The notes under the pieces are model-generated. The model was not told the origin of the DNA. It did not search any database and saw nothing but the letters and a program-made list of their open reading frames with translations. Below, piece after piece: positions 1 to 20,355 of a stretch of 20,355 bases of DNA. A program made the position numbers and the translations under genes. This DNA is from Paramoeba atlantica. Its lineage: Eukaryota > Protista > Discosea. Positions within the stretch are counted from its first letter, which is position 1; the number at the start of each line of letters is the position of its first letter. The stretch lies in NCBI GenBank assembly GCA_977017575.1, contig CDRNVI010000125.1, forward strand, positions 1 to 20,355, read 5' to 3'.

Positions 1-193
1 AAACTGATAACTGCCCACTAAAACCGCCAGAGATGAATGCATAAAAATCATCATGTTCTCCCGGTTCCACATACACTTTTTCCGCAGCACTGGAAGAGAG
101 TGCTCCGTTCGTACTTTTGCCCTGTTGGTTACAACCTACAAAAAATAGGGTAGCAGCTGCCAGTGCAAACATTAAATAGTTTGATTTATTCAT
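1..193 (-). CDS. nosZ: Sec-dependent (clade II) nitrous oxide reductase, 5' part, runs off the window edge
   Basis: Not in the ORF track. Manual translation from ATG at 193 gives MNKSNYLMFALAAATLFFVGCNQQGKSTNGALSSSAAEKVYVEPGEHDDFYAFISGGFSGQLSV. This is a lipobox signal with no twin-Arg, followed by the VYVxPGEHDxFYAFxSGGFSGQ motif typical of the Bacteroidota NosZ N-terminus. Confidence 0.9.
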   Translation of the reverse strand, partial: MNKSNYLMFALAAATLFFVGCNQQGKSTNGALSSSAAEKVYVEPGEHDDFYAFISGGFSGQLSV

Positions 194-215
194 TGTTATT
201 GTTTTAAAAGTTATT

Positions 216-796
216 CTATTCTTTTGGCGGTAATATTACTTTGTCAACTACATGCACAATGCCATTACCTGCTTCCACACTAGCTATAATTTTTGCACCA
301 CCGATGTAAACATCATCCCCTTGTACCTCAACCTGCACATTTTGGTTATTGGCCTGCCCCAGTTTTTTGAATTTCTTCAGAAATTCTTTGGAGTATTTCC
401 CGGTGTTACATGGTATTGTAAAATGTTGGCCAGCGTTGCTTTGTTCTCTGGTTTGACCAGATTTTCCACGGTTCCTTCGGGTAAAGCATTAAAAGCCTCG
501 TTGGTAGGTGCAAAAACCATTAGAGGCCCTGCGTTGACCAAGGCATTCTCAAGTTCCGCCGCTTGTACCGCCGCAACTAGAGTGGTGTGATCTTTGGAAC
601 CTATAGCTATATCCAAAACATTGGGTGTGGCCTCATCGTCTTTGAGAAAAGCTTGCCCTTGTTTTTTTGTTTCTTGCTTTGATGCCACCTGTTGGGTGGA
701 AGAGTTCGATGAATTGGTTTCGTTTTTACAGCCTATCAATAAGCAGACTGCAAGGAACAAACCAGTAAAAAAATTAATGTTGGCTACTAACTTCAT
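216..796 (-). CDS. Fasciclin (FAS1) domain lipoprotein, apparent 1-nt deletion frameshift near 394
   Basis: The track ORF has a lipobox (LLIGC), the H1 motif LMVFAPTNEAF and ILQYHV. Adding one T (GGA AAT [T]AC) continues the frame as YSKEFLKKFKKLGQANNQNVQVEVQGDDVYIGGAKIIASVEAGNGIVHVVDKVILPPKE, stop 216-218, which supplies the missing H2 motif NGIVHVVDKVI. Confidence 0.88.
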
Positions 797-805
797 ACAT
801 ATTTG

Positions 806-1312
806 TTATAGGGTTCTAAAATATTCGAGCACGGCTCGGGCCTGATCCTCTGTCAGTCCCTGATTGGCCATGGGAGATCCATTAAATTCAATTAAAAGTT
901 CTTTGGCAAGAGCATCTTCTTTTACCATTCCTTCTGGATTCAATATCATGTTCATAACCCATTCCGGGGAGCGCCTTTCCAAAATTTCGTTGGGAGCGGG
1001 ACCTATAAATTTTTTCCCAACCCGATGGCATGCCAGACACATTTGGTTATATACTGCTTCCCCTTCGGCAACTAGGTCTTGATCTATGGTTTCATCCAAT
1101 TTTATGGATTTGATGGGGCCTACACCTTTGCTAGAAAGATCAATTCTTTCGGAAGGCTTGATGCTGTTGACCTCAACTTCTGGGGTAGGTTGTTCCGTGG
1201 CAGTTTTTTGTCTTTCGACTTGAAAGCCCTCTTTTTGCTTGTCTGCTTTTCCACCACAACCTATAAGTAGGGTTAGGAGAAAAAGTGCAGTACTTTTTAC
1301 AATAATTTTCAT
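806..1312 (-). CDS. c-type cytochrome lipoprotein of the nos cluster
   Basis: Single heme motif CLACH, IGP turn, distal PMANQ Met ligand, lipobox LLIGC. Co-oriented upstream of the fasciclin gene and nosZ. Confidence 0.9.
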   Translation of the reverse strand: MKIIVKSTALFLLTLLIGCGGKADKQKEGFQVERQKTATEQPTPEVEVNSIKPSERIDLSSKGVGPIKSIKLDETIDQDLVAEGEAVYNQMCLACHRVGKKFIGPAPNEILERRSPEWVMNMILNPEGMVKEDALAKELLIEFNGSPMANQGLTEDQARAVLEYFRTL

Positions 1313-1370
1313 CCGTTTTCAGTTGTTAGAATTCGAGACCAAAATTATTGTGTGTTCGTTAGGCAGAATA

Positions 1371-1382
1371 TGATAAAAATCA
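1371..1382. promoter_or_regulatory. FNR/Crp-like palindromic box TGAT-AAAA-ATCA
   Basis: Perfect TGAT-N4-ATCA in the divergent intergenic region between the cytochrome c/nos operon and the Rrf2 gene. Resembles the FNR consensus TTGAT-N4-ATCAA. Confidence 0.55.
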
Positions 1383-1437
1383 CATTTAGGATAAAAAAGT
1401 CTTTTTATTATTGCCTTTGTAATCATGATGAGGTAGC

Positions 1438-1869
1438 ATGCTTTCCAATTCAGCCAAATATGCTTTAAAAGCCGTCCTTTTTTTGGCTTTGCATACCAAT
1501 GAAAATCAAAAAATGATGGTCAAGGATATCTTTGACAGAATTAATGTGCCCCAATCTTATTTGGCCAAACTTTTGCAGGAGTTGTCAAGACGGGAAATTA
1601 TATCCTCTGCTAGAGGACCTAAGGGAGGCTTCTACGTGACCGATAAAAACAAAGAATTGCCCTTGATCAAAGTCATTAATGCCATTGACGGGGAAGGACG
1701 TCTACGATCCTGTATGCTTAGTATAAATGAATGTGATAGTGAAAATCCTTGCGCGTTGCATGATTTAGTTGGGAATGCCAATAGTTTTTTTATCAAAAAC
1801 ATGGAAGAGACCACTATTGATGACCTTGTTACCAATGTAAAGGAGGGAAGAGCCTCACTTCCTCTTTGA
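1438..1869 (+). CDS. Rrf2-family transcriptional regulator (IscR/NsrR-like, probably Fe-S binding)
   Basis: N-terminal wHTH (SYLAKLLQEL...GPKGGF) and three Cys in CMLSINECDSENPC. Confidence 0.92.
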   Translation: MLSNSAKYALKAVLFLALHTNENQKMMVKDIFDRINVPQSYLAKLLQELSRREIISSARGPKGGFYVTDKNKELPLIKVINAIDGEGRLRSCMLSINECDSENPCALHDLVGNANSFFIKNMEETTIDDLVTNVKEGRASLPL

Positions 1870-1899
1870 TAGTAGCAGAAAAAGGCTTTCTACAATGTA

Positions 1900-3087
1900 C
1901 TATTGTTCTGTACTGAATTTATAAATGCAAGAAGAGGTATAGGTTTCCGTTGGTTCCAAAATTGTACTTGGAAAGTTGGCCTGATTTGGAGAGTTGGGGT
2001 AGTGCTGGGTTTCAAGACAAAAAGCCCCTCGTTTTAGGTAAGGTTTTCCATTTTTCCCCATAACAGAGCCATCCAAGAAATTACCGCTATAGAATTGAAT
2101 ACCAGGTTCGCTGGTATACACTTCCAGCACTCGACCGGATAGAGGTTCTGTTACTCGAGCCGCAAATTTCAACCCTTCCCCATTTAAAGGAGCGGCATTC
2201 AACACAAAATTGTGATCGTAACCATCTGCTATTCTCAGTTGTTCAACATCCAATGCAATGTCTTTGCCAATCAACTTTTCAGTGGTAAAATCCATTGGAG
2301 TATTCGATACCGAAGCAATTTCACCGGTAGGAATAAGGTTTTCGTTGACAGGAGTATAATGGTTGGCGTTGATTTCAACAATATGATCATCAATGGTACC
2401 TTCTCCTTCTCCTTTTAAGTTGAAAAACGAATGGTGAGTTAGGTTAACAATGGTCTTTTTATCTGTTGTTGCTTTATAATAAATTTTTAGTTCGCCTTCG
2501 TCCGTTAGTTGATACAATACTTGCACCATCAGATTTCCGGGATAGCCTTCTTCTCCGTCCGGTGATAATCTGGAAAATTGGATTTCATTTTCTGTAGCAT
2601 GGTCAACCGTCCAAACTACATTGTCATATCCTTGGTTTCCACCATGTAAATGATTAGGGCCATTATTCTTGGCTAGTGGATAGTGTACACTGTCCAATGC
2701 AAATTTTCCACCCGCTATACGGTTCCCATATCTGCCAATGGTGGCCCCAAAATATGCAGTTCCAGGTTCGTTGTAAGCTTTCAAACTACTACGACCAAGA
2801 ACAACATCGGCGAACACTCTATTTTTATCAGGAACCGAAAGTGAAATTAAGCGTTGCCCAAAATTTGTAAAACTAGCTTGTAGTCCAAATTTGTTCCTTA
2901 AAATATATAGATGGATGGAATCCCCGTCAATAACTTGTTCAAAATTCTCAGGGTTGATTGGGCTGACCATGTTTGTGGGTTCGTGTTTGGGTGTGGTTTC
3001 GACGCCTAGTTTATCCCCTCTTTTTTTACACGAACATAACAGTATTATGCACAACAAAAGTATATGGGAATAAGTGCGAATCGACAT
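1900..3087 (-). CDS. galM: Aldose 1-epimerase (galactose mutarotase), lipoprotein signal
   Basis: Motifs GRYGNRIAGG, NHLHGG, NLTHHSFFNL and CLETQHYPNSPN; N-terminal LLCSC lipobox. Confidence 0.95.
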   Translation of the reverse strand: MSIRTYSHILLLCIILLCSCKKRGDKLGVETTPKHEPTNMVSPINPENFEQVIDGDSIHLYILRNKFGLQASFTNFGQRLISLSVPDKNRVFADVVLGRSSLKAYNEPGTAYFGATIGRYGNRIAGGKFALDSVHYPLAKNNGPNHLHGGNQGYDNVVWTVDHATENEIQFSRLSPDGEEGYPGNLMVQVLYQLTDEGELKIYYKATTDKKTIVNLTHHSFFNLKGEGEGTIDDHIVEINANHYTPVNENLIPTGEIASVSNTPMDFTTEKLIGKDIALDVEQLRIADGYDHNFVLNAAPLNGEGLKFAARVTEPLSGRVLEVYTSEPGIQFYSGNFLDGSVMGKNGKPYLKRGAFCLETQHYPNSPNQANFPSTILEPTETYTSSCIYKFSTEQ

Positions 3088-3243
3088 TTATAGGTTGCTA
3101 AACAAGGGACTAAAAGTAATTAAAAACTCCAAAAAACTTAGGAGGCCAATTTAATTAAGACCAATTTAATTGTTAGATATGCAACTGTTCGGTGAGTTCT
3201 GTAACCTGTTTAACGACGGTTTCCTTGGATAATTTAAGAACAT

Positions 3244-3268
3244 AAAAATCCCGGCATGTGCCGGGATT
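3244..3268 (-). terminator. Intrinsic terminator downstream of tRNA-Lys
   Basis: 10-bp inverted repeat aatcccggca-tg-tgccgggatt (3247-3268), followed by a T run on the minus strand. Confidence 0.8.
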
Positions 3269-3281
3269 CCATTTTTATTTG

Positions 3282-3354
3282 TGACCTGACTGGGGCTCGA
3301 ACCCAGGACCCTCTCCTTAAAAGGGAGATGCTCTACCAACTGAGCTATCAGGTC
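3282..3354 (-). tRNA. Bacterial tRNA-Lys(UUU)
   Basis: Fully paired GACCTGA/TCAGGTC acceptor stem, TAGCTCAGTTGGTAGAGC D arm, CT-TTT-AA anticodon loop, GTTCGAG T loop. Confidence 0.97.
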
Positions 3355-3394
3355 TTGCTTATATTGAGCATTAAAATATTGCTCTAAGCGGGTG

Positions 3395-3402
3395 CAAATA
3401 TA
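3395..3402 (-). promoter_or_regulatory. Bacteroidota sigma-A -7 element for tRNA-Lys
   Basis: TATATTTG on the minus strand matches the TAnnTTTG consensus, about 40 nt upstream of the tRNA. Confidence 0.65.
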
Positions 3403-3437
3403 ATATCATTAATCTATTTTACAAGATGATTTAATGA

Positions 3438-3445
3438 TAAATTTG
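3438..3445 (+). promoter_or_regulatory. Bacteroidota sigma-A -7 element for aroK
   Basis: TAAATTTG matches TAnnTTTG, about 32 nt upstream of the aroK ATG. Confidence 0.55.
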
Positions 3446-3477
3446 TGTTTTTTTCAAATCGATTTTATTTCACATAA

Positions 3478-3993
3478 ATGAAAGTAGTTCTAGTAGGTTA
3501 TATGGCAAGTGGAAAGTCCTCTGTTGGGAAACTGTTGGCCAAGGATTTAGGATTGGAATTCATTGATTTGGATACCTATATTGAAGCGCAACAACAAAAA
3601 TCCATAAAGGAGATTTTTTCGGAAAAGGGAGAGATATTCTTTAGGAAATTGGAACACCAAATGTTGTCGGATGTCCTGACCCAAAAAAAATCCATCCTAC
3701 TCTCTACTGGCGGTGGTACGCCCTGTTATGGAACCAATATGGAAACCATTCTTCAAAACTCAGATCACTCCATCTATTTGCAACTACCCGTTTCGGCTTT
3801 GGTGGAACGTATTGAAAAAGAAAAGGACCAACGTCCTTTGGTGCGCGAACTTGGCATTGATGAACTTCCAGAATTTGTTGGCAAACACCTGTTTGAAAGA
3901 AGATCCTATTATTCACAAGCCAAACATGTGTTGGATTGCAATGGTAAATCAATTCAAGAAGTGTTGGACGAAATAAAGACCACTTTACTCTAA
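3478..3993 (+). CDS. aroK: Shikimate kinase
   Basis: P-loop GYMASGKS, DLD, GEIFFR, STGGG, RPL motifs. Confidence 0.96.
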   Translation: MKVVLVGYMASGKSSVGKLLAKDLGLEFIDLDTYIEAQQQKSIKEIFSEKGEIFFRKLEHQMLSDVLTQKKSILLSTGGGTPCYGTNMETILQNSDHSIYLQLPVSALVERIEKEKDQRPLVRELGIDELPEFVGKHLFERRSYYSQAKHVLDCNGKSIQEVLDEIKTTLL

Positions 3994-4481
3994 ATAGACT
4001 GCATCATTTTTGGATTGAAACTCCACTCGAATATGCTCATTTAAGGAAGTAGACAGGGAAATACCTTTGTAATCGGCCTTAATAGGATATTTTTTGTGAT
4101 TTCTATTGACCAGTACCGCAGTTTTCAATTGCTTGATAGGAGTTTTTAAAAAATGATGTACTCCATAGATTAATGTAGTCCCGGAGTTAAGCACATCATC
4201 CACTAACACAATGGATTTGTTTTGGTAGGCATCCTCGGTAATGGATGTACTTACCCCGCTTGCCAAGGGATTTTTTTTATCCATCTTCAAATGGCAGAGC
4301 ACAATCTCGGCATCTGTGATTCTTTTAAGGACTGTGGCTATTTTTTTTGCAAAGTTAAGTCACCCCCTTCAATGCCGGCAACAACAATTTCCTTCTCGTC
4401 CACATTGGCCTCATAAATCTGATAAGCAATACGCTTTACGGTATGTTTTATTTGGTCGTGGGTAAGTATGCGGTTTAACAT
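3985..4481 (-). CDS. Type I phosphoribosyltransferase (PyrR-like), apparent 1-nt deletion frameshift near 4361
   Basis: ATG at 4481 gives MLNRILTHDQIKHTVKRIAYQIYEANVDEKEIVVAGIEGG. Adding one G joins it via GLNFAKKIATVLKRITDAEIVLCHL to track ORF 3985..4302, which has the PRPP-binding VLVDDVLNSGTT. The repaired length is 165 aa. Confidence 0.88.
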
Positions 4482-4518
4482 AAATCCTTTTTAAGGTAAC
4501 CAAAGATAAAAAAACAGA

Positions 4519-4892
4519 TTATTCAGATTCGTCTATATAGCCGTCAATATCCCTTCTATCCTTTTTAGTAGGTCTTCCCAACCCCCTTTTTTCTATAATG
4601 GTCCTTAGCCAATTTTAGTAGCTCGTTGTTCTGGAAAGCTTCCTTTGGAGTGTTATCCTTTCTATAAATATCCACCAATTTGGCACCAACACGACTTTCT
4701 GGAATATCCAATACGGTAAGTTGATAATCTATCTGGTTTTTTCTTAGCTGAATGGTATCCATCTGATAGACCTCTCTAGAAGCCTTTACCCACGCTACCG
4801 TTGATTCGCACTTGCCCTTTTTTAACAGCTTGGGCAGCAACGTTTCTTGTTTTGTAGTATCTAATACACCAAAGATATTTGTCAATGCGCAT
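4519..4892 (-). CDS. hslR: RNA-binding S4 domain protein (Hsp15 family), two apparent 1-nt G insertions near 4790 and 4578
   Basis: ATG at 4892 gives MRIDKYLWCIRYYKTRNVAAQAVKKGQVRINGSV, the classic Hsp15 start. It then shifts into the track frame KASREVYQMDTIQLRK..., and after a second shift ends GRPTKKDRRDIDGYIDESE, stop 4519-4521. The repaired length is 123 aa. Confidence 0.85.
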
Positions 4893-4969
4893 AACTCTGC
4901 AAATCTTTGTTAATGCAATGAACAAAAATAGTGGAAAATTGTATCTTGCGCAGCTAAATAATGTACTTG

Positions 4970-5191
4970 ATGAAGCACGGGATTTTTGTTTTTTTGTTTA
5001 CAGCAGTATTATTTTCTTCCTGTAGCAATGATGATGGTGGGCCAAATGTTGACACGGTACCTCCAAGATTGTTGGCTGAGGTATCCCCAGAAAATGATGA
5101 GGAGATCAGGGAGTTTTTGCAGACCCACTTTTATAACTACGAAGAATTCATGTCTCCACCTGCCGATTTTGATTTTAGAATCAAGATTGAT
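4970..5191 (+). CDS. Lipoprotein, probably FKBP-type peptidyl-prolyl isomerase, truncated at the junction
   Basis: MKHGIFVFLFTAVLFSSC lipobox, then PPRLLAEVSPENDEEIREFLQTHFYNYEEFMSPPADFDFRIKID, which I recall as the N-terminus of flavobacterial FKBP lipoproteins. The residues after 5191 are antisense mitochondrial read-through. Confidence 0.65.
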
Positions 5192-5202
5192 GTTTTCATC
5201 AC

Positions 5203-5517
5203 TTATATTATTTTTTTTCTCGATGATCTATTATTAGTCTTTGATCGTTGATTATACATAGGTAACCCTCTAATACGTTTATAACCAAAATAAGAACCAT
5301 TAACTATTTTTTTCATAATATTATTATATCTAATATGTTTAATTTGTTCCTTCCTTTTAAAAAAATATAACAAATTTTTTTCTAACTGTTTTAATAAACC
5401 TTTATTATTAATATTTTTATAAGATTTATTATATAATAAACCAAATTTAAATAATATTATAGATAATAAAGATAAACCAATATTATAATTATTAATTATA
5501 TAACGTTTTATATTCAT
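5203..5517 (-). CDS. rps13: Mitochondrial ribosomal protein S13
   Basis: C-terminal GSYFGYKRIRGLPMYNQRSKTN matches the uS13 motif G(S)YRGxRHxxGLPVRGQRTxTN; ends the r-protein cluster. Confidence 0.9.
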   Translation of the reverse strand: MNIKRYIINNYNIGLSLLSIILFKFGLLYNKSYKNINNKGLLKQLEKNLLYFFKRKEQIKHIRYNNIMKKIVNGSYFGYKRIRGLPMYNQRSKTNNRSSRKKII

Positions 5518-5522
5518 ATTTT

Positions 5523-5711
5523 TTATTGTTTATTTATAATACCCATTTCATATAAATAATTTTTAACTTGAAGTCAATTATTATCGAAAATTAATTTTAA
5601 ATTATAATTATGTATATAAATTAAATTATAATTATAATTTAATAATACCTTAAAACTTATTGCTGAATTAATAAGTTCCTTTTTTTCAATTTTTTTTAAT
5701 ATATAATTCAT
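5523..5711 (-). CDS. Unidentified orf62 between rpl6 and rps13 (weak uL18-like candidate)
   Basis: Open only with TGA=Trp: MNYILKKIEKKELINSAISFKVLLNYNYNLIYIHNYNLKLIFDNNWLQVKNYLYEMGIINKQ. It fills the spacer, overlaps the rpl6 end by 44 nt and stops 5 nt before the rps13 ATG. Confidence 0.3.
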
Positions 5712-6207
5712 TTTTTTCTTTTATTCCTTTCAATTTATATGCATTTAATTTTCTAAATTGTTTTATTTCCACAGATACTTTTTTTAACAAAAAATAAGAA
5801 TTACTAAATAAAAAAAGATTTCTTCTAGATCTAGATTTAACTAAAATACCTTTAGGTATATTATAATAAATCAAATGATTATAACCTATATTAAATCTTA
5901 ATTCATTATCTTTTCAAATAGTCATAGTAAAACCTAAACCTATAACATTTAAAATTAGGCAATAACCTCTTATCAAATCAATTAAATTTTTTTTTATATA
6001 TCTTTGAAATAAACTATAATATTTCTTTCTTTTAATAATTAATGTTTTATTATTTAATATAAATATATTTTTTTGATTAAATAAAGTTAAGATAGTTAAA
6101 TCTATATTTTTTTTATAATTACTTATTATATTTTCCATAAAAATATTATTATTATTATGTATAATATTTAATAAAGAACTTTTTCCTAAATATAATTTTT
6201 TTTTCAT
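5668..6207 (-). CDS. rpl6: Mitochondrial ribosomal protein L6
   Basis: Two track ORFs join through TGA (5914-5916) as Trp. Motifs GYCLILNVIGLGF, NIGYNH and RKLNAYKLKGI. 179 aa; the last few codons are uncertain. Confidence 0.88.
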
Positions 6208-6210
6208 TTA

Positions 6211-6603
6211 TTATAATATATTTTTATATAATAGATGTACTTTTAATAAGGCTTTACCACCACTTTTTATAATATAAGCTTCATCGTGTGTTAACAAACC
6301 TTTATTACTACTATAAAAACAAGGATTAAAATAAAATTTAGAAAAATTTTTATTAAAAGTTTTAAATTTTAAATATTGTTTATTACCTCCTGAAGATAAT
6401 TGTTCTAAAAAAATTAAAGGCTTATTATTATAATATTTTAATGTTATTTTTATTTGGTATTTATTACATATTATAAAACTATTTATCAAATTTAATTCGT
6501 ATAAACGTGATAATATAGGTAAATACTTTTTTTTTAATGGTATATATAAACTTTTTAAATTAGCTATATACCCATTATTAATTTGACTACAAAAAAAATT
6601 CAT
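6211..6603 (-). CDS. rps8: Mitochondrial ribosomal protein S8
   Basis: SQINNG, LSSGG, SSNKGLLTHDEA...GGK motifs; spc-operon position. Confidence 0.9.
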   Translation of the reverse strand: MNFFCSQINNGYIANLKSLYIPLKKKYLPILSRLYELNLINSFIICNKYQIKITLKYYNNKPLIFLEQLSSGGNKQYLKFKTFNKNFSKFYFNPCFYSSNKGLLTHDEAYIIKSGGKALLKVHLLYKNIL

Positions 6604-6606
6604 AAC

Positions 6607-6876
6607 TTATCAAGATATTTTTTTTAAACCATTAATTTGTTTCATATTAAGAGATTCTTTTATATTCATTCTAGATAAAGAAAAATCTCGAAAAACAGAT
6701 CTCTTTAAACCAGTTTCTATACAAAAATTCTTTCTTAAAATATTCTGTATAGGAAAATTCAAAAAAAATATTTTCTTTTTCCTATATATTTTTAAAATTT
6801 TTAATAATAATACTAATGTATTATTATTATTATATATTCTTTCATTTTTATAATTTTTTAAAAAATATTTTTTCAT
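6607..6876 (-). CDS. rps14: Mitochondrial ribosomal protein S14
   Basis: NFCIETGLKRSVFRDFSLSRM...GLKKISW. The terminal Trp is TGA followed by TAA, matching the conserved uS14 ending KxSW. Confidence 0.92.
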
Positions 6877-7405
6877 GTAATTTATTATTATTATTATTAA
6901 AATTTATAATAAAATTTAATTTAAAAATTAAATTATTTACCAATATATCTTCATCACTATTTAATCCTAATAAAAAATTAAAATTTTTTAATTCTATTAT
7001 ATATTTATTTTCTTTTCTATAAATTAAACTACTTTCATTATTTTTATCTAATAAATTAAAAATAATATTATATAAATAATTTAAATTAGAATAAATATTA
7101 TTTTTTCTTAAACTTAATCCTAAAACTATATAATAAGATAAATTATTACGTCTTGATCTAACAGAAAAATTACGTAATGTCTCTTTTTGTATTTTTATAA
7201 TAGAAACTCTTTGATTAAATAATTTTTTAAATAATTTATTTAAAATAAGATACCTTCTAACTATATTACCATCTGAAGAATATAATTTAACTTTTACATC
7301 AACTTTATCAATTTTTGATAATTGATTAAAACTCATTATATTCAATTTACTAATGTTATCCTTTTGTATTATATTTAAATTACTTTTGAAATCTATACTT
7401 TTCAT
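6848..7405 (-). CDS. rpl5: Mitochondrial ribosomal protein L5 (divergent)
   Basis: Lies between rpl14 and rps14; SKIDKVDV and LSLRKNNIYSNL resemble uL5 segments; 185 aa. Confidence 0.75.
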   Translation of the reverse strand: MKSIDFKSNLNIIQKDNISKLNIMSFNQLSKIDKVDVKVKLYSSDGNIVRRYLILNKLFKKLFNQRVSIIKIQKETLRNFSVRSRRNNLSYYIVLGLSLRKNNIYSNLNYLYNIIFNLLDKNNESSLIYRKENKYIIELKNFNFLLGLNSDEDILVNNLIFKLNFIINFNNNNNKLHEKIFFKKL

Positions 7406-7409
7406 ATTT

Positions 7410-7766
7410 TTATATTATACTTTGCATCAATAAGAAAACTTTACGGTTTATAAATCTTAAAAATTTTAAACTAATACCAAATAATTTTGTACCTAAAGGT
7501 AATTTTTTTTTATTTATCAAAACAACAGCATTATCACTAAATTTATAATAATTTATATTTTTTTTTAAATTATATTTAGTTCTAATAATTAAAGCCTTAT
7601 ATAATTCTCCTTTTTTTATTCTTTTTTTAGGATTATTTGTTTTAACAGTTATTAATATTTCATCACCAATAGATCCATATTTTTTTCTTTTATAAATTCT
7701 TATACATTTTACAATACGTGCACCAGAATTATCACTACAATTTAAATAACTACCTACTAAAATCAT
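7410..7766 (-). CDS. rpl14: Mitochondrial ribosomal protein L14
   Basis: LNCSDNSGARIVKCI, GDEILITVK, FSDNAVVL, PLGTKLFG. Confidence 0.95.
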   Translation of the reverse strand: MILVGSYLNCSDNSGARIVKCIRIYKRKKYGSIGDEILITVKTNNPKKRIKKGELYKALIIRTKYNLKKNINYYKFSDNAVVLINKKKLPLGTKLFGISLKFLRFINRKVFLLMQSII

Positions 7767-8206
7767 TTTTCTTTATTATAAACTAATTTAAATTTAATAT
7801 TTGATTTTAATGAGGCTAATTTAACAATTCCTTTAATATATTCTAATAATTTTTTTTTATCATTATCATTTAATATAAATAATTTATTAGAAAAACCAAA
7901 TTCAATAAATATTTGACCTTTTGATATATTAAAATAATATTCATTTAATGCACCCTTACCTTTACCCATTCTAACACCTATAGGTTTTGATGTATTTTTA
8001 AAACTTGGATGAAAACGTATAAATAATTTAGTAAAAAATTTTAATCTTTTTTTTAAAAAAAATAATAAAGCCTTAAATTCATTATTATATAGTATACCAC
8101 CTTCTAAAAAATATATAGCAAATTGACCATTATATATTTTTTCTATCGAATTTTTAGTATTAGAATAATTTAATATTAAATGTTTTTTGACAAAAATTTT
8201 TTTCAT
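7757..8206 (-). CDS. rpl16: Mitochondrial ribosomal protein L16
   Basis: TSKPIGVRMGKGKG motif. With TGA=Trp the frame extends two codons (WF) to TAG at 7757-7759. Confidence 0.93.
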
Positions 8207-8254
8207 TTCTATTTATTTCTTAATAAATCAACTTTTTTTCTCTTTTCTTTCTTT

Positions 8255-9445
8255 TTATATTATAGAAGATAAATACACTTTTCTAACATAACTCATTTTT
8301 ACACCACAAACACCATACCGCATAATTAAAATAAACTGATTATAACTTAAAGGAGAATTTATATTACTTGGTGAAATAGCACCAAATTGTTTAATAAACT
8401 TTTTATTTCTTAACTTTTTTTTATATCTCCCTGCATAACCTATTTTAAAACCTATAATACCTCTTTCATTTTTTAATTTATTATGTAATAAATAAGCATA
8501 ATGCTCTATTTTATAACCTACACGCAATCTTCATAAAATTAGCTTATATAAAGAATAAGTAGAATAATTTACTTCTTTTTTATCTATAAAATTAATTATA
8601 GGATTATTAACTTTAAAAATTTTTTTTATAAAAAACGATAAAAAATTTTTTAATATAAAAATAAATTTTTTATCTAAAGTTAAATAATTAGTATTTTTAA
8701 TATATTTTAATCTATTTAATCAACGATTAGTTGGAATTCTTAATAAATTAAATCATTTATATTTAAAAATAAAATTGTTTAATCTTTTATTATTTTTATA
8801 AATATAAATATTTTTATATTTATAAAAATATTTAAAATTATTAAAATTATTTATTGATTTTTTTTTTCATATATTTTTAAATATTTTCTTTCTATAAAAC
8901 CCTCTACAAGACTTATTATAAAATAAATAATATTTATTATTATGCATGTCTCAAAAAAAATAATTAAATCAAACATATTTTTTATTTTTATAAAAATTTT
9001 TTCTTTTACTATAAAAAAATTTACGTAAAAAATTTAATATATATTTTTTTTTTTTTTTTTCTTTTAAAAAATTATATTTTTTTTTTCTTTTTGACTGTTT
9101 ATACTTTAAAAAAGATTTAAATATATATTTTTTTGACTGATTATAATATTTTTTTAATTTATATTTTTTTGACTTAATATCATTAATTAAAAATTTATTA
9201 TCATCATTTAATAAATTTAAATTTATTATCATCATTTTATATGTTTTAATTATATTTAACGGTAATATTTCTAAATTTAACTTGTTTCAATTAATTATAA
9301 CTTTAATTCAATTATAAAATTTAATAATATTATAATCTTCTAAAAAAAATAATTTATAATTTTTTTTTGTAATATTATTTCAAGACGAAATTCAATATTT
9401 ACTTTTTGATAATCTATATGTTATTGGATTAACTAAATGTCCCAT
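8255..9445 (-). CDS. rps3: Mitochondrial ribosomal protein S3 (396 aa)
   Basis: Traced codon by codon as one frame under table 4, from MGHLVNPITYRLSKSKYWISSW (ATG 9445) through track ORF 8969..9235 to the C-terminal GFKIGYAGRY...YGVCGVKM. Confidence 0.9.
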
Positions 9446-9447
9446 AA

Positions 9448-9726
9448 TTATTTTTTCTTTTTCTTTATACGTTTCTTTTTCTTTTTATCTTTTATTAATA
9501 TATTTTTTGAAAAAAAAAAATAATTAATCATATAATTAACCATACTATCTATAATTTTAATTGGAATAAAATAACGACCATTATATACAGTTAATCTTTT
9601 ATTAATCATATAATTTTTTATTTTAAAACCTTTTACTTTTAACTTTAATCAAATAAATTTATCTATTTTTGAAAAATTTAAAAAATAAATAATATTTTTA
9701 ATATTTTTAATATTATTTAAATTCAT
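9448..9726 (-). CDS. rps19: Mitochondrial ribosomal protein S19
   Basis: Not in the track. Table-4 translation: MNLNNIKNIKNIIYFLNFSKIDKFIWLKLKVKGFKIKNYMINKRLTVYNGRYFIPIKIIDSMVNYMINYFFFSKNILIKDKKKKKRIKKKKK, with the VYNGRxFxPIxIxxxMV motif. Confidence 0.85.
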
Positions 9727-10455
9727 TTTTTTTTTTTTTCTTAGTTGTAGGTACAAATTTTAATACACGTCTTGTAAAATTTGGACAATCGACTCATGGA
9801 GAAGTTTTACCTCTACCACCACCATTAGGGTGATCTACACAATTTTTTGCTACACCTCTAACTGTTGATTTTTTACCTAATCTTATATTAACACCCGCTT
9901 TACCTTTTTTTATTAAATTATGCCCTCTATTTGATACAATACCTATCATAGCTTTATTATATTTAAAAATTAATTTTTCTAAACCAGAAGGAAATCTTAT
10001 TAAATAATAATTTTCATTTATTTGTGATATTAATAAACAAAAAGAACCTGCAGATCTAGCTACTTTACTTCCTTTTTTTTTTTTAATTCCATACAAGATA
10101 TAAAAGAACCAAATTTTATATTTACTAAAGGATATGTAGAACCAACAATTTTATCTACTGAATTTAAAACCATACCTTCTTTCAAACCTTCGGCTGCTAA
10201 AATATAAGATAAAAATCCATTTTTATAACATATTAAAGCTATATTTGCAGATCTATTAGGATCATACTCAATTCTTAATACCATTGCAGGTATATCAACG
10301 TAAGTTCTAAAAAAATCAATTAATCTATATTTCTTTTTAACTCTAGTTCCCTTTGATTTAACTGTTTTATGACCCATATTATTAACTCCTGCATAATTTT
10401 TTAAACCAAATGTTAAATATTTTATTGTTTTTGACTGTTTTTTCCTTTTTAACAT
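9713..10455 (-). CDS. rpl2: Mitochondrial ribosomal protein L2, apparent frameshift in the A12 run at 10073-10084
   Basis: N-half has IEYDPNRSANIALI and YILAAEGL; C-half has VARSAGSF and VRGVAKNCVDHPNGGG...SPW(TGA). The 3' end is uncertain. Confidence 0.92.
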
Positions 10456-10458
10456 ATA

Positions 10459-10878
10459 TTATTTTTTTCTTTTAAATCTAATATTAGTATAATTTGCTTC
10501 TATTAATCTATACATATCATTTTTTTTTTTTATAGATAAACCTTTATTATTATATACATCTATTAATTCATTTTGAATACGTTCTTGAAATTTTCGCTCA
10601 GTTCTAGAATTAATAGATCTAACTATTAATTTAACAGAATATGGTATAGAATCTTTTGATTTTAAAATATGTGGTATTAATAATTTTTTACCTCCTACTT
10701 TTTTAATATAACAAAACATTCTAATGAATATATTAGTTTCTATTTGTTTAAAAAAAGTATTTAAACAACCATATATTTTTTTTATATTAATAAAAATTTT
10801 CTCTAAACTTAATATAATTCGTTGTTTTTTTCCTTTTCTTATTAATAATTGTATTAAATATTTTATTCAATTATTCAT
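10459..10878 (-). CDS. rps7: Mitochondrial ribosomal protein S7
   Basis: ATG 10878 gives MNNWIKYLIQLLIRKGKKQR..., in frame with the track ORF (KKVGGKKLLIP...KKKNDMYRLIEAN); directly follows rps12. Confidence 0.88.
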
Positions 10879-11281
10879 CTTTTAAAATCTTTCCTTCCTT
10901 CTTTTTTTTTTTCAAACCATATTTAGAACGACTTTTATTTCGTTCTTCACGTTCTCAATTACTAAAATCATATTTTCCTTTTATCAATTTATAACGTACA
11001 CCTGGAATATCTCTAGCACGTCCTCCTCTAATCATAACAACTGAATATTTTTGTAAATTATGACCTTGACCTGGTATAACTGCTATTAATTTTTTACCTG
11101 TTGATAACCTTATTTTTGCTACTTTTCTTTTAGCGGAATTTGGTTTCTTTGGACTAACACTATTTCTAATTTCAATACAAACACCCTTTTTTTGTGGACA
11201 AGAATCTAACAAAAGAACTTTTGTACGTCTTTTTTTTTTTACTCTGCCTTTATTTCTTATTAATTGATTTAACGAAGCCAT
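10871..11281 (-). CDS. rps12: Mitochondrial ribosomal protein S12
   Basis: [32 protein letters not shown]. Reading TGA (10955-10957) as Trp recovers the conserved RSKYG. Confidence 0.97.
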
Positions 11282-11649
11282 AATTTATATTTAAATATTA
11301 TTAACGTATTAATAATTTTTTTTTCATAATTGAATTTCATTAATTCATTAAATAAATAATACTTTTTATTTAAATTTAATAACAAACTATTATTTATTTG
11401 TTCTAAAGTTCCTTTACTATATAATTTATTTTTATATCATAAAAATAATAATTCATCATTATTTAAAAGATTAGTAAAATAATCTTTAAAATATTTCTTA
11501 TTAATAATTAGAAAATATTTAATATTAACAAAAATTTTATATAATAAATTAATATTAGATAAATTCATTATGTTTAAATAAATTTGTTCAAAATTATTAA
11601 ACGATTTATATTGATTTACATAAAAAAAAGCTATAATATTATTATTCAT
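11269..11649 (-). CDS. Unidentified orf126, candidate divergent ribosomal protein L10
   Basis: 126-aa frame under table 4, tightly packed between rpl11 and rps12, the position of rplJ in the ancestral rplK-rplA-rplJ-rplL-rpoBC-rpsL order. Confidence 0.4.
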
Positions 11650-11655
11650 ATTTTT

Positions 11656-12111
11656 TTATATAATTTTATTAATTTGTAAATTTGATATAGAAAAAAAACT
11701 ATTTTTAAATCGCAATTTTATTCAATTTTGATTTAAATTATTATATAATTTAAATCAATAATAATTACGCAATATAACAATATCATATAGACTTCTTAAT
11801 GTAATTGAATTTTCCATAATATTTTTATTAGTTAAACTCATAATATTTCAAACCAATTTTAATAAAGTACTAAAAGAAGGTCCTTTTATTAAAAAAACAA
11901 ATGATTTATCAGTATATAAAAATAATCTAACATATATTAATAAATCTTCCGATCTATATATAAAAGTTTGTTTATTAAATTCATTACAAAATTCTTTGAT
12001 TTTCTCTCTATTCATATAAGGACTTAAATTAGGTCCTATATTTAAATTTTCAAAAGCGGCACCTCTAGAATTAATTCTTAAATTAAAAAATCGATTTAAT
12101 TTTTTTTGCAT
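11656..12111 (-). CDS. rpl11: Mitochondrial ribosomal protein L11
   Basis: GAA...IGPNLSPY...IKEFCNEFNKQT...SFVFLIKGPSFSTLLK matches the uL11 N-domain; extends through TGA codons to 151 aa. Confidence 0.88.
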
Positions 12112-12144
12112 ATATATAATATTTAATATTATATTAATATTTGA

Positions 12145-13329
12145 TTAACGATCAACCTCCCCAAAAACTATATCTAAAGTACCTATAATAGTAACAACGT
12201 CGGCTATCATATGTCCTTTTGATAATGTATCTAATAATTGTAAATGATTAAACCCTGGTGCTTTTATCTTACATCTTACCGGTCTATTTAATCCTCCCGA
12301 AACTAAAAAAACACCAAATTCCCCTTTAGGAGCTTCTATAGATCTATAAACATCATTAAAAGGTATATTAACACCTTCTGTAAATAATTTAAAATGATGT
12401 ATTAAAGATTCCATAGAAAACTTCATTAATGATCTTGAAGGTATAGTTAATTTATTATTGTAATTTGAAATAGGACCTTCTTTTAAATTATTTAAAAGTT
12501 GTAAAATTATTTTTAAACTCTCATGCATTTCTTTTAATCTAATTAAAAATCTATCAAAACAATCACCTTTATTTCCTATATAAGATTTAAAATCAACTTC
12601 ATTATATAATTCATAAGGTTCACTTTTTCTAATATCTCAAGGAATACCAGATCCTCTTAAAATAACTCCACTACAACCTCAAGTTTGTGCTTGATTATAA
12701 TCTAATATACCTACATCAACTAAACGTTGCTTTCATATTCTATTTCTATTTAATAATTCTTCCATTTCCATTAAAGAGTTAATAAAATTTTGTGTAAATT
12801 TATATAAATCATCACAAAAAGACATAGGTATATCTTGACTAATACCTCCTGGTCTTATATATGCTGCATGCATTCTAGCACCTGATACCCTTTCGTAAAA
12901 TTCCATTAATTTTTCACGTTCTTCAAAAAGTCATAAAAAAGGTGTCATCGCTCCAACATCTAACGCATGTGTAGTTAACCCTAAAATATGATTTAATATT
13001 CTAGTTATTTCACCAAAAATCATACGTATCATCTTTGCTCTTATAGGTACATTAGTAGAACTTAAAGTTTCTACAGCTAATGAATAACAATGTTCTTGAG
13101 CCATCATAGATACATAATCTAATCTATCAAAATAAGGTAAAGCTTGTATAAAAGTCTTATATTCTATTAATTTTTCAGTACCTCTATGTAATAATCCTAT
13201 ATGAGGATCAGCTCTTTCTATAATTTCACCATTTAATTCTAATATTAATCTTAAAACTCCATGAGCTGCTGGATGCTGTGGTCCAAAATTAATTGTAAAA
13301 GTTTTTATTTTTTTAAATATTTTATTCAC
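12145..13329 (-). CDS. nad7: NADH dehydrogenase subunit 7 (49 kDa), GTG start
   Basis: [50 protein letters not shown]. Four in-frame TGA at conserved Trp sites. 394 aa. Confidence 0.98.
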
Positions 13330-13333
13330 GTTT

Positions 13334-13924
13334 TTAAAGTATATATTTTTTATTTAATAAAGGATTAGTAAAACTATATGATCTCATATTTTGCATTAAT
13401 TCAATAGGCTCATAAATCAAATATTGTTTATCTTCATCATACCTTATTTCTAAATAACCATTTAAAGGAAAATCTTTACGAAACGGATAACCTTCAAAAC
13501 CATAATCGGTTAATATACGTCTTAAATCTTTATGACCCATGAAAAAAATACCATACATATCTCAAACTTCACGTTCTAACCAATCGGCACCTAAATAAAT
13601 ATCAGTAATAGATCTTATAACATCTAATTTATCACAAGATACAGAAATAATTAATCTAGAATTATAATCTATACTTAATAAATTATAATCAATTTCAAAA
13701 CGTTTAGCTCTATCAATAAAATCACTACAGCAAATATCAGTTATTACCTTATATCTTAAAAAAGTATGCTTATTAAAAATATTTAAAACAAAACCTAAAT
13801 AATCTTTTGATACTAATTTAATTTTAATAAATTCATCTGTTATTTTTATATGCGAAATATATTTAATTAGTAAATTTAATATATAATTTACAGCATAATT
13901 ATTACTATTTTTTTTTAATAACAT
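13334..13924 (-). CDS. nad9: NADH dehydrogenase subunit 9 (30 kDa)
   Basis: WLEREVW(TGA)DMYGIFF...[21 protein letters not shown]; two track ORFs join in frame; 196 aa. Confidence 0.97.
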
Positions 13925-13936
13925 ATTTTTTTTTAT

Positions 13937-14260
13937 TTATAATATATATAATTTATATTTTTTAATATTACTAATTTTATATTTTAAAAATAGATTAAAA
14001 GGTGAAGTAACAAAATATAATTGATTTAATCGTATATTTTTATACCTATAATATAATAAAAAACTTTCCATATTTAAATATTGTTTTTTATTAAAATTTA
14101 TAATTAATCCTTTAATATTACGTATATATACATTCTTATATAATCAATAAAAATACTTTAATTCAATAGATATATTATTATTTAATTTTTTTTTATATTC
14201 TATAGATAATAAACTTAAAAAAGAATTATCTAAATAATTTATAATTTTTTTCTTTTTCAT
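13937..14260 (-). CDS. rpl19: orf107, probable divergent ribosomal protein L19
   Basis: Not in the track. MKKKKIINYLDNSFLSLLSIEYKKKLNNNISIELKYFYWLYKNVYIRNIKGLIINFNKKQYLNMESFFIYYRYKNIRLNQLYFVTSPFNLFLKYKISNIKKYKLYIL. The ordered motifs IKGLII / ESFFIY / YFVTSP / KKYKLYIL parallel bL19 FEGVVI / SSFTVR / FPLHSP / RRAKLYYL. Confidence 0.62.
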
Positions 14261-14263
14261 TTA

Positions 14264-14845
14264 TTATTTTCTTCTTCTCTTTTTCTTTCTTATACCATTA
14301 TGAGCTTTTGATTTTATAAAATTAATAAATTTTAAATTATAAGGTGTAGTCTCAAATAATTCTTTTAAATTTCTCAAAATTTTACGAGTATAATATTTAT
14401 AAATTATATTTAATATGAATCATTTTTTCATATATAAATATTTAAAATCAATTTTTGAAGCTACAATTAATGAATTTAAAGCAAAATATGTTTTTTTTAA
14501 TGATTTTTTATAATAAAAACCACATGAAAAATTTTTTATTACATTACCATTAATATGCGAAAAATTTAAATAAGTATTTTTTCTAAATTTTAATATTAAA
14601 TTAATAGTACAAAATTTCAAAGATAACCAATCTAATTTTGAACCCTTTAAAAAATTTTTTAGTATATTAATAAATAAATATCTTTTTTTAAAAAAAGATA
14701 ATTTTGCTGCATATATATACTTGCTTTTTAATTTTATATTAAACCTTTTTTTATATAATCAAGTAACTGAAGGTAATTTAAATCTATTAATTTTTATTAA
14801 TTTAATTTTTCTATTTTTTATTAAACTTTCTTTTTTTTCAAACAT
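14264..14845 (-). CDS. rps11: Mitochondrial ribosomal protein S11 with long basic N-terminal extension
   Basis: GNVIKNFSCG...KKTYFA and the C-terminal KAHNGIRKKKRRRK (uS11 PHNGCR motif). First in-frame ATG after a TAA is 14845; a possible true start is 14935. Confidence 0.85.
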
Positions 14846-14962
14846 ATTTGTATTATTTCTTTCCTTAATTTTTCTATTTTTTTAAACTTTTTCTATTTTT
14901 TTAATTTTCTTTCTTTTTCTTTTTAATGATTCCATATATAATTAAATTTAATATAAGTTTTA

Positions 14963-15035
14963 TGTGGAGAATTGGGTTTGAACCAATGACCTAAAGCTTT
15001 TCAGGCTTTCGCTCTACCTACTGAGCTACCCCCAA
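14963..15035 (-). tRNA. trnF: Mitochondrial tRNA-Phe(GAA), U1:C72 mismatch
   Basis: AAAGC-CT-GAA-AA-GCTTT anticodon arm; acceptor TTGGGGG/TCTCCAC. Confidence 0.93.
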
Positions 15036-15068
15036 AAACTTTTTTTAATTACAAATTATTTTTTTATA

Positions 15069-15157
15069 AGGTAAGTATGGGATTCGAACCCATGATATTA
15101 TATGAATAATATATCGATTTAGCAGATCGACACCTTCAACCACTCGGTCAACTCACC
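15069..15157 (-). tRNA. trnS: Mitochondrial tRNA-Ser(GCU)
   Basis: TCGAT-CT-GCT-AA-ATCGA anticodon arm, long variable arm, fully paired acceptor GGTGAGT/ACTTACC. Confidence 0.93.
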
Positions 15158-15164
15158 TAAAATA

Positions 15165-15280
15165 TGATTTGTATTAATATAAATTATACACTCTTATAAA
15201 AAATTTTTACGAGAATATAATTTAATATATAATATTTTAAAGGGGTTCGATAAGCTTACCTTTAAAAAAATATAAATTTA
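15165..15280 (-). rRNA. Candidate divergent AU-rich mitochondrial 5S rRNA
   Basis: About 115-120 nt spacer after rns, holding the stem TTTAAAGG/CCTTTAAA around a loop containing AAGCTTATCGAAC (loop C-like CGAAC), plus a second imperfect hairpin at 15183-15221. Confidence 0.42.
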
Positions 15281-16808
15281 TTTTCCATCCAGCGGCAGGT
15301 TCCCCTACCACTACCATGTTACGACTTCACCCTGATTACTATCAATACATTCAAATTAAATAATTAATAATATTTTATTAAAAATTAATTATCTCCAATA
15401 GATTAAAAATAATTAATAAATATAAATTATTAATTATAATTTTTCCAATATTAACAACTTTCTTGGCGTGACGGGCAGTGTGTACTAGATTTGGATCCCA
15501 TTTCACCGAAACATTCTAATTTTCGATTACTGACGATTTCAACTTCATATTTTTATTTTCAAAAAATAATCCGAACTATAATAATCTTTATAATTTAAAT
15601 AAATTTCACAATTTATTTTTTTTTTGTAATTATTTTTGTAACACGTGTGTAGCCCAATTCATCAGGGCCATACCTACTTGACGTCCTCCTCTATTTCATT
15701 TAATATATAATTAATAATACAATATAATAAAATATAATAATATAACATATAATAATATAACATATAATAATATAATAATATATCATATATTTTATTATAT
15801 TGTAAGGATTACACTCGTTACAGGACCTAACCATACATATCACTACACGAGCTGACGACAGCCATGCGACACCTGCTTAAAAAAATTATATAAAGTTTAC
15901 TATATTTATTATAATTTTTTTCAATCTAGAATTGGTAAGATTTTATGCGTTATATCAGATTAAACCACATGTTCCACCGTTCGTACCAAATCTCAGCCAC
16001 TTTCTTTGAGTTCAAATCTTGCGATCATACTCCCCAGGCGGGATGCTTACGCGTTAGCTAAACCACAAAAATATTTCCTACAGTTAGCATCCATCGTTGT
16101 CTGTATGGACTACAAGGGTCTCTAATCCTCTTTGATACCCATACCTTCGTACTTTAGTGTCAGTATAAATCTAATATATAGCTTTCACCTTCTGATAGTC
16201 TCCATAGTATCATAAAATTTCACCTTTCCTCTATGAATACTATATATCTGAATAATACTCTTAGTTTACTAATATATAATTTATTCATTATTACTAATAA
16301 CGCCTTTAAAATTATATTATTAAAAAATAAACCACTTATCATACGCTTTACGCCCAGTAATGCTGAGTAACACCCGCATCCTCCGTATCACCGCGACTGC
16401 TGGCACGAAGTTAGTCGATGCTTATTCTTAAGTTTAACCTCATTATGCTCACTTAAACAAGAATTTTTTCAATAAATTGTCATAATTCAGGTAGTTTCGC
16501 TGAATCAAGCTTTCGCTCATTGTTCAATATTCCTCACTGCTGCCTCCTAATGGAACTTGGGCCTTTTCTCATTCCCAATGTGGTTGTACCTCCTTCTAAG
16601 ATCAACTAAGAATTATCGGCTTGTTAGTCTATTACACCTCCAACTACCTAAATCTTTATAAACCAGTTTATAATATAAACATAATTATAAGTCCCGTTTT
16701 TATATATTACTCACCCTTACGCCATTAATTTTAAATTTTAAATTTTAATTGACTAGCATGTGTTAAGCGAACTACTAGCATTTACTCAAAGCCAGAATAA
16801 AACATACA
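15281..16808 (-). rRNA. rns: Mitochondrial small subunit rRNA (ends approximate)
   Basis: Universal motifs on the plus strand: tgttacgactt, gacgggcagtgtgtac, acgagctgacgac, gtatcaccgcgactgctggcac, gccagaataaaac. The 3' end reads GGAUGGAAAA with no anti-SD. Confidence 0.97.
15737..15777. repeat. 15-bp tandem repeat (ataatataacatata) x2 plus partial, inside an AT-only rns expansion
   Basis: Copies at 15737-15751 and 15752-15766, partial copy from 15767. Confidence 0.7.
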
Positions 16809-16875
16809 AGTATTTATATATAATATATTATATATTATATAATTTACATAAATTTTTTCCTTTTTTTTTATATTA

Positions 16876-16964
16876 AGATTATGGTGGGATTCGAACCCAC
16901 GGTATAATTAAAATTATACGATCCTTTTCAAGAGGATTACTTTAAACCACTCAGCCACATAAAC
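16876..16964 (-). tRNA. trnS: Mitochondrial tRNA-Ser(UGA), U2:U71 mismatch
   Basis: ATCCT-CT-TGA-AA-AGGAT anticodon arm, long variable arm; acceptor GTTTATG/CATAATC. Confidence 0.93.
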
Positions 16965-16978
16965 TTATTTTTATACAA

Positions 16979-17051
16979 CGACCTGGGCAGGATTCGAACC
17001 TACATCTGATTGGTTAACAGCCAATTATTTTACCATTGAAACTACCAAGTA
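16979..17051 (-). tRNA. trnN: Mitochondrial tRNA-Asn(GUU), U1:C72 mismatch
   Basis: ATTGG-CT-GTT-AA-CCAAT anticodon arm; acceptor TACTTGG/CCAGGTC. Confidence 0.93.
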
Positions 17052-17065
17052 TTGTTTTACAAATT

Positions 17066-17124
17066 ACAAACTTTAATTTAAAGTTTGTTGTTTTATTACA
17101 TATAATATTTTCAAAATATTATAT
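17066..17124. repeat. Two adjacent perfect inverted repeats downstream of rnl
   Basis: ACAAACTTTA-ATT-TAAAGTTTGT (17066-17088) and ATATAATATTTT-C-AAAATATTATAT (17100-17124). Confidence 0.7.
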
Positions 17125-17179
17125 ATTTTATTTTTTCTTATATAGAAATTTTTTTTCTTTTTTCTTTTTTCTTTTTATA

Positions 17180-18921
17180 AATTAGATTGATTCTTAAAAT
17201 TATTTAGCTCAATCCTTCACAGGACTTACACACATAACTTAATTTCGTAATAATCTTTTACAATCAATACTTTTAAAATATTTTAGGATAATCTTCTTAT
17301 ATCTGATTGAATTCAATAATTATATTATTAATATTTAGCTACTCGACTATGCAATTATAATTACAACCGATTTACCAGTGATATTCCTTCTCCAGTCCTT
17401 TCGTACTAAGATAAGATTCCTTCAATTTTAATTAATTAATAGTAGATAGGAACCGAACTGTCTCACGACGTTCTGAACCCAATTCAGGTGCCACTTTAAA
17501 AGGCGAACAGCCTTACCCTTGGAACATTTTTCTTAACCAGGATGTGACCAATCGACATCGAGGTGCCAAACAACCCCGTCGATATCTTCTCTCCGGAGTC
17601 ATAAGCCTGTTATCCCTAGCGTACCTTTTATCCGTTGAGCAATATATTTTCCATTCAATTATATTGGATCACTATGACCGACCTTTTTAATAAAAAAGAT
17701 CTCTGTTTGATTTGTAAATCTCACAGTTAAGTAATTTTTAGCCATTACACGCCAAAATTTTCTAATAAAATTTTAATTACCTTTGTACACCTCAGTTACA
17801 TTTTATGAGGTCTCCGCCCCAGAGAAACTACCAAATATATTCTGTCAATAAAAAATTATTAAGTTTTAAAAATTAAATTCAAACTATTCCAAGATTATCT
17901 AAACAATTAACTAATATTAAAATTTTAAAACGATTAGTTTGTATCCTATAAATTTAATTTTTAATAACAAAATATAACTGCAGTAAAGGTGCATAGGGTC
18001 TTTCCGTCTAGCTATTAATACGCTGCATCTGCACAGAGAATTCAATTTCGCTAATATAATACCGGAGACAGTAGGATAGTCGTTACACCATTCATGCAAG
18101 GTCGAAACTTACTCGACAAGGAATTTCGCTACCTTCGAACCGTTATATTTACAGCTGCCGTTTACTATTCATTCTATATAAAGCTAATACATTAAATAAT
18201 ATATTAACAATAACAATTACCTTTATAGCACCGGGCAGGTGTCAGACCTTATACATCATTAATTAATTTTGCAAAGTCCTGTGTTTTTGTTAAACAGTCG
18301 CCATCCTCTATTCTGTTACATTTTTATATACATATAATGTATATATAAAAATACTCTTTCTCCCGAAGTTACAGAGTTAATTTGCCGAGTTCCTTCGATA
18401 TTATTCAATTATTCATCTTAGTATTCTCTACTAATCCTCCTGTGTAGGATTTAGTACGGTTTTATATATTAGTATTCTTTCTTGAATTTATTTTTTAAAT
18501 ATTTCAATCAATATATTCGAATATATCACACAATGTTTTACTATATTTATTAAAATTTGATCCTAAAATATTTAAAAAATAAACTGTCATCTACTAATAA
18601 CGTTAAAAATATTATGTTATCCTTATAACTCTTTAACTACCCTTCAATTATTACTATCATATTCATTTTAGGGACCGATTAACCTAATGCAGTTTATCTT
18701 GACATTAGAAACCTTAGATTTTTAGATGATAATGTTTATAACATTATTTTTGCTACTTATGCCAGTATATTCAATTTTAATTTTATAATTTAACAATTTT
18801 TTTTTTCTTTTATAAAACGTTCTACTACCAATATTATTATTTTAAATAATATTTTATAATTTCGGTATAATATTTATTTTCGTTATATTTTTGTATATAA
18901 ATATCTATCAATAGTGAGCTG

Positions 18922-18955
<34 letters not shown>

Positions 18956-19950: not shown

Positions 19951-20012
19951 TAAAAAAATTTTAAAATGATTTGTTTAAAAATTATTCAACATTATTATAT
20001 ATTTTAATCAAA

Positions 20013-20093
20013 TGGAAGTGGTAGGATTCGAACCTACGATGTATAAATACAATAGATTTACAGTCTACCGCTTTACCGCTCAGCCACACTATA
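20013..20093 (-). tRNA. trnY: Mitochondrial tRNA-Tyr(GUA), mismatches at pairs 1, 2 and 3
   Basis: GTAGA-CT-GTA-AA-TCTAT anticodon arm; acceptor TATAGTG/CACTTCC. Confidence 0.93.
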
Positions 20094-20101
20094 AAAAATT
20101 A

Positions 20102-20175
20102 TAATTGGTATAGGACTCGAACCTATATCTAATGATTTAGAAGATCATAATTTTAACCAATTAAACTAACCAATT
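20102..20175 (-). tRNA. trnR: Mitochondrial tRNA-Arg(UCU)
   Basis: ATGAT-CT-TCT-AA-ATCAT anticodon arm; fully paired acceptor AATTGGT/ACCAATT. Confidence 0.92.
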
Positions 20176-20202
20176 AAATACAAAACAACAAAAATAGGTT
20201 GA

Positions 20203-20355
20203 TTAAGTATATAAGATTAAGAAAGCCATCATTAGGGCAAACAGAGCAATTGCTTCTGTTAATGCGAAACCTAATAAAGTATAACCAAATAAATCGTTTT
20301 TAATTGTAGTATTACGTGAATAAGCAATTAAAAAAGCTCCAAAAACTATTCCTAT
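20203..20355 (-). CDS. atp9: ATP synthase subunit 9 (c), 3' part
   Basis: [50 protein letters not shown], containing the proton-carrying Glu in LGFALTEA. Confidence 0.96.

Follow-up and report, generated by a model that had tools for sequence, protein, structure and literature searches.

A blunt join of Allomuricauda chromosomal DNA to protist mitochondrial DNA in a contig of the Paramoeba atlantica assembly, an almost certain artefact of laboratory work or assembly

The stretch of DNA analysed here, called the window in the following, comprises 20,355 bases (contig CDRNVI010000125.1, positions 1 to 20,355, of the Paramoeba atlantica assembly GCA_977017575.1) and consists of a bacterial and a mitochondrial segment. 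The bacterial segment at positions 1-5191 belongs to the chromosome of an Allomuricauda sp. (Flavobacteriaceae) and is 99.9% identical to OZ220751.1, the chromosome of an uncultured Allomuricauda sp. with a length of 3,459,028 bp. The alignment contains 0 mismatches and five one-base indels and ends exactly at 5191. This reference was found by scanning species-representative genomes with the aldose epimerase, for which the protein match was 100%. The same chromosome is contained in the ENA assembly ERZ24900291, a public metagenome assembly, as contig ctg4026c, in which the final “c” is the assembler's suffix for circular contigs. The segment carries genes for proteins of the Pfam families fasciclin, cytochrome c, Rrf2, aldose 1-epimerase, shikimate kinase, and phosphoribosyltransferase, as well as an S4/HSP15-like gene. 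A tRNA-Lys gene at 3281-3354, located 1.8 kb from the join, is the sole bacterial tRNA gene in the window. In the Allomuricauda chromosome, a nos-type cluster (nos_propeller and two NosL-domain genes; L043:8917-13188) adjoins the cytochrome c and fasciclin genes beyond window position 1, and its predicted products suggest nitrous-oxide reduction in the bacterial associate of the amoeba.

At the right end of the bacterial segment, the 5′ part of a lipoprotein gene is located on the plus strand (4961-5191; 77 codons from the first ATG, with the called start at 4970). The deduced protein is cut after ...RIKID, and the intact protein goes on with TIAGANADK.... In the closed chromosome the gene is whole and encodes 324 aa when counted from the first ATG and 321 aa from the called start. 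The chimeric ORF, taken with either start, was on record nowhere; this is a weak negative which covers other assemblies only, as the assembly of the window itself seems not to be indexed. In the same look-up, the intact 321-aa lipoprotein served as positive control and was found in the Allomuricauda chromosome, the match being to the called start, and the 324-aa form gave no record. A 30-mer spanning the junction was absent from JGI metagenome contigs, an expected result to which little weight can be given.

The mitochondrial segment covers positions 5192-20355, and all of its genes lie on the minus strand. It was assigned by identity to contig ctg3923c of ERZ24900291, by Rfam and ARAGORN searches, and by ORFs translated with code 4. 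This contig has a length of 39,429 bp, is circular by name, and uses code 4. The comparison with the window covered positions 5192-6841, with an identity of 100%, and 6881-15516, with an identity of 99.96%; across all compared mitochondrial contigs the corresponding values are 100% and 99.94-99.97%. The content of the segment includes a ribosomal-protein cluster, rpl11, nad7, nad9, six tRNAs, and the rRNAs, of which both the SSU rRNA (15277-16813) and the LSU rRNA (17173-19953) are detected in full length by Rfam on the minus strand. Among the six mitochondrial tRNAs (14963-20176), two are tRNA-Ser with a long arm and one is a tRNA-Tyr with a length of 83 bases.

Next to the join, a complete gene with a TAA stop is located at 5203-5517 on the minus strand (5206-5517 without the stop). 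No Pfam family was obtained for its product, and the gene is taken as rps13 from its position and a C-terminal motif. The exact product is also encoded on four contigs, namely ERZ24894578 ctg2721l (36.6 kb), the circular ERZ24900291 ctg3923c, ERZ26167977 ctg8206_4.78x_l, and a Logan contig of run ERR14835899. In all four, a spacer of 3 bases separates rps13 from a following ORF of 1159 codons that begins with ATGAAAAC. Of this ORF, no more than the first 8 bases are left in the window (5192-5199, minus strand), at which point the four contigs run on into the ORF. The native gene order beyond it is cob, nad3, atp6, nad4L, nad5, and nad11. The ORF itself (L040:10319-13798) contains nine in-frame TGA codons, has no Pfam family, and might represent a ribosomal-protein gene that has been fused or expanded. 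In the linear contig of ERZ24894578, cob and nad5 are each called in two pieces (L039:14418-15567 and L039:17567-19586) and are whole in the ERZ24900291 circle; the splits are probably due to homopolymer errors.

The small circle combines genes for the respiratory chain, ribosomal proteins, rRNAs, and tRNAs with the use of UGA for tryptophan, as in a protist mitochondrion of the amoebozoan type, and its predicted gene set is rich and normal for the mitochondrial genome of a protist. A related mitochondrion is present in a different sample (ERZ25074695 ctg243506_2x_l, 12,555 bp). It shows 83-88% DNA identity and the same gene order, so that a sister species of the host appears to have been sequenced as well. 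At the place of the 1159-codon ORF, the contig of this relative harbors ORFs of 306 and 911 codons.

The two segments meet at 5191|5192. The earlier note on this DNA had placed a junction at about this position, with a drop to extreme AT, a switch of the genetic code from table 11 to table 4, a lipoprotein gene cut in frame after RIKID, and a mitochondrial gene cut just behind its start at 5199. All of these observations are borne out. Bacterial homology stops exactly at 5191 and mitochondrial homology starts exactly at 5192 in the alignments to both parents, which defines the junction to the base. Compared separately, the left half is a flavobacterial chromosome and the right half is a mitochondrial circle of the protist type. 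The GC content is 39.2% in 1-5191 and 21.0% in 5192-20355, and it falls across the join from 0.34-0.50 to 0.08-0.30 in bins of 50 bases. The interrupted genes are those described above, the lipoprotein gene on the left and the 1159-codon ORF on the right.

The change of the genetic code is equally distinct. In 17 right-hand ORFs (two ORFs overlapping 6842-6880 were left out of the codon counts), TGA occurs 29 times in frame, compared with five occurrences of TGG, and the only stops are TAA (n=15) and TAG (n=2). Both nad7 (402 codons) and rps3 (409 codons) are whole when translated with table 4 and broken with table 11. The left-hand ORFs are ordinary table 11 genes: no in-frame TGA was found in the four ORFs checked, and the Rrf2 gene terminates with TGA.

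A three-way comparison of the window with the bacterial reference and the four mitochondrial contigs showed that the join is blunt, with 0 bases of microhomology and 0 bases of filler. The window reads ...AAGATTGAT|GTTTTCATC... across the join. Past the breakpoint, the bacterial reference continues with ACCATAGC, and ahead of it the mitochondrial references read ...ATCATGTA. Not a single base at the join is common to both parents and not a single base has been added, which rules out filler as well as the remnant of an adapter and the duplication of a target. The check for adapter remnants proposed in the earlier note was thus negative. The window is also free of N letters. The join is therefore not a scaffolding gap, and this origin was rejected.

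The lack of an integrase, an IS end, a tRNA att site, and a target duplication, as stated in the earlier note, holds at the join. In the window and 6 kb of reference flank, we found no integrase, IS element, att-type tRNA, terminal repeats, or duplication associated with it. The neighbours in the bacterial reference (genes for an outer-membrane beta-barrel protein, transketolase, and tRNA-guanine transglycosylase) likewise include no mobile genes. An insertion by a mobile element or by site-specific recombination, which would come with element genes or repeats, was rejected since neither is present. The contig ends within mitochondrial DNA, so only a single junction is visible, corresponding to one end of any putative insert.

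Apart from the join, the window differs from its references by small errors of its own. All five differences in the bacterial segment are changes of homopolymer length, and one-base homopolymer errors unique to the window were located at 403, 3248, 4361, 4586, 4791, and 10084, positions at which the closed reference circles are clean. Several of them disrupt genes, namely at least three in the bacterial segment as well as mitochondrial rpl2. The deletion at 403 (GG for GGG) truncates the fasciclin gene to 142 codons, compared with 196 in the reference, and the one-base deletion at 4361 shortens the phosphoribosyltransferase gene from 168 to 124 codons. The S4/HSP15-like gene comprises 114 codons in the window and 158 in the reference. 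In the mitochondrial segment, a run of T10 at 10084 splits rpl2 into two frames, whereas the run is T11 in each of the three reference assemblies, in which rpl2 is a single gene of 247 aa. In addition, a two-base change at 11186-11187 leads to K in the QKRGVC stretch of rps12, where the three references encode R. The R of this stretch is conserved in S12 proteins generally. The contig of 20 kb thus carries about one homopolymer error per 1-4 kb. Errors that occur only in the window and break genes indicate that the consensus depth of the sequence was low or nil, and the profile resembles that of one accurate long read or of a contig with very low depth.

Further observations come from the parent genomes. 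Both are present in ERZ24900291 as separate closed circles, ctg4026c and ctg3923c, and both are uninterrupted at the breakpoint. Two further assemblies of this mitochondrion, one contig of a Logan run, and the relative with 83-88% identity in ERZ25074695 are colinear through the mitochondrial breakpoint. An insert in the bacterial recipient was not found in independent assemblies and samples on record, and the closed chromosome has the intact lipoprotein gene. A biological signature in the form of a duplication, a recombinase site, or a mobile-element end is missing at the join. Since both partner genomes are closed and uninterrupted circles from the same sample, the join, although present in the contig, almost certainly arose as an artefact in the laboratory or during assembly. 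The earlier note had preferred a chimera over real integration, and this preference is supported by the intact parent circles, the blunt and non-homologous join, and homopolymer errors resembling those of a single read.

The contig is, very probably, an in vitro ligation chimera that was kept as an orphan contig. During library construction, a sheared fragment of the Allomuricauda chromosome would have been joined end to end with a sheared fragment of protist mtDNA, most likely by blunt or A-tail ligation ahead of the ligation of adapters. The hybrid molecule would then have been sequenced as one long read or as very few reads. As it matches neither parent genome, the assembler may have left it as an orphan contig of 20 kb. 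Decontamination may have missed this contig because host mitochondrial DNA makes up three quarters of its length. We infer the ligation step and the support by a single read from the structure of the join and the error profile. Between 0.02 and 3.17% of the reads from ligation-based long-read libraries have been reported to be chimeric, with differences between kits, and the same study cautions that chimeric reads may mimic lateral DNA integration (PMC8495745).

Other origins of the join were weighed against ligation. Template switching during long-range PCR or multiple-displacement amplification (MDA) of a low-input library could also create a hybrid molecule, and amplification steps have been named as a source of chimeras (PMC8495745). 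The small size of the runs, 55-202 million letters, would fit low-input protist libraries. However, template switching normally needs a few shared bases, and there are 0 at the join; furthermore, the inverted or foldback structure typical of MDA is absent, as each half is colinear with its reference. We therefore regard an amplification chimera as improbable. A pure mis-join by the assembler, with no chimeric molecule behind it, is very improbable. Overlap detection can go wrong in sequence as extremely AT-rich and low in complexity as the right side, but overlap and graph assemblers need shared sequence, the parents share none at the breakpoint, and no Ns mark a scaffold gap. With nothing shared on which an overlap assembler could act, the contig is most simply explained by a physical hybrid molecule from which one read or more was obtained.

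A real but rare junction formed in vivo, by illegitimate end-joining of amoeba mtDNA to the chromosome of a flavobacterium that lived alongside the amoeba or served as its food, or by the converse event, can hardly be credited. The same applies to the variant in which Allomuricauda lives with or inside the amoeba and the junction is confined to a small minority of cells and hence absent from the consensus circles. Non-homologous end joining also gives blunt joins and both organisms co-occur in all four runs studied, but the closed bacterial chromosome and the mitochondrial circle of the same sample are both uninterrupted, neither a second junction nor a duplication nor a mobile-element gene is present, and the break destroys a bacterial gene along with a mitochondrial ORF that looks essential.

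The co-occurrence of the two organisms, also put forward in the earlier note, was confirmed by the word content of four runs from one study. Each run holds 85-97% of the sampled words (2700-7700, half of them bacterial and half mitochondrial), which means that both DNAs are in every library. A marine Allomuricauda with a closed genome thus accompanies an amoeba-type protist in four of four sequenced libraries. The feature lies in the DNA precisely as the earlier note has it, but the contig is almost certainly chimeric and the join no product of biology. The main use of the result lies in quality control. In the protist assembly, the contig should either be split or be taken out, since it could be mistaken for a case of lateral transfer involving a bacterium and a mitochondrion.

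Ligation chimerism as the preferred origin can be compared with chimeric long reads from ligation libraries of PacBio and ONT (PMC8495745). As in those reads, unrelated parents abut without shared bases, the two halves match their parents almost perfectly, and the error profile resembles that of low depth. In contrast to those reads, the chimera described here persisted into an assembly as a contig of its own. Regarding the biological setting, the genome project of Paramoeba pemaquidensis (PMC5601477) is similar in that a culture of a marine amoeba contained abundant associated bacteria, and many contaminating bacteria have been reported in cultures of a related amoeba. In that project, thousands of bacterial scaffolds were discarded and one host mitochondrial scaffold of 48,522 bp was obtained (PMC5601477). 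Compared with this length, the circle described here has only 39,429 bp and comes from a different organism. Unlike the bacterial scaffolds of that project, the present contig is a hybrid and not purely bacterial. This hybrid nature is probably the reason why it escaped filtering.

The mitochondrial partner, on the other hand, is best compared with mitochondria of the Acanthamoeba type, with which it shares a circle of about 40 kb, UGA as a tryptophan codon, genes on one strand so far, and unsplit full-length rRNAs. The mitochondrial genome of Acanthamoeba, a work of Burger et al. from 1995, is reportedly a circle of about 40 kb with UGA for tryptophan, rich in ribosomal-protein genes, and equipped with nad7, nad9, and nad11. 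Many ribosomal-protein genes and the same three nad genes are found here as well. The differences are a lower GC content, ranging from 11 to 27% in windows of 500 bases, and the 1159-codon ORF following rps13. From the gene content we infer an affinity to amoebozoans of the Acanthamoeba type.
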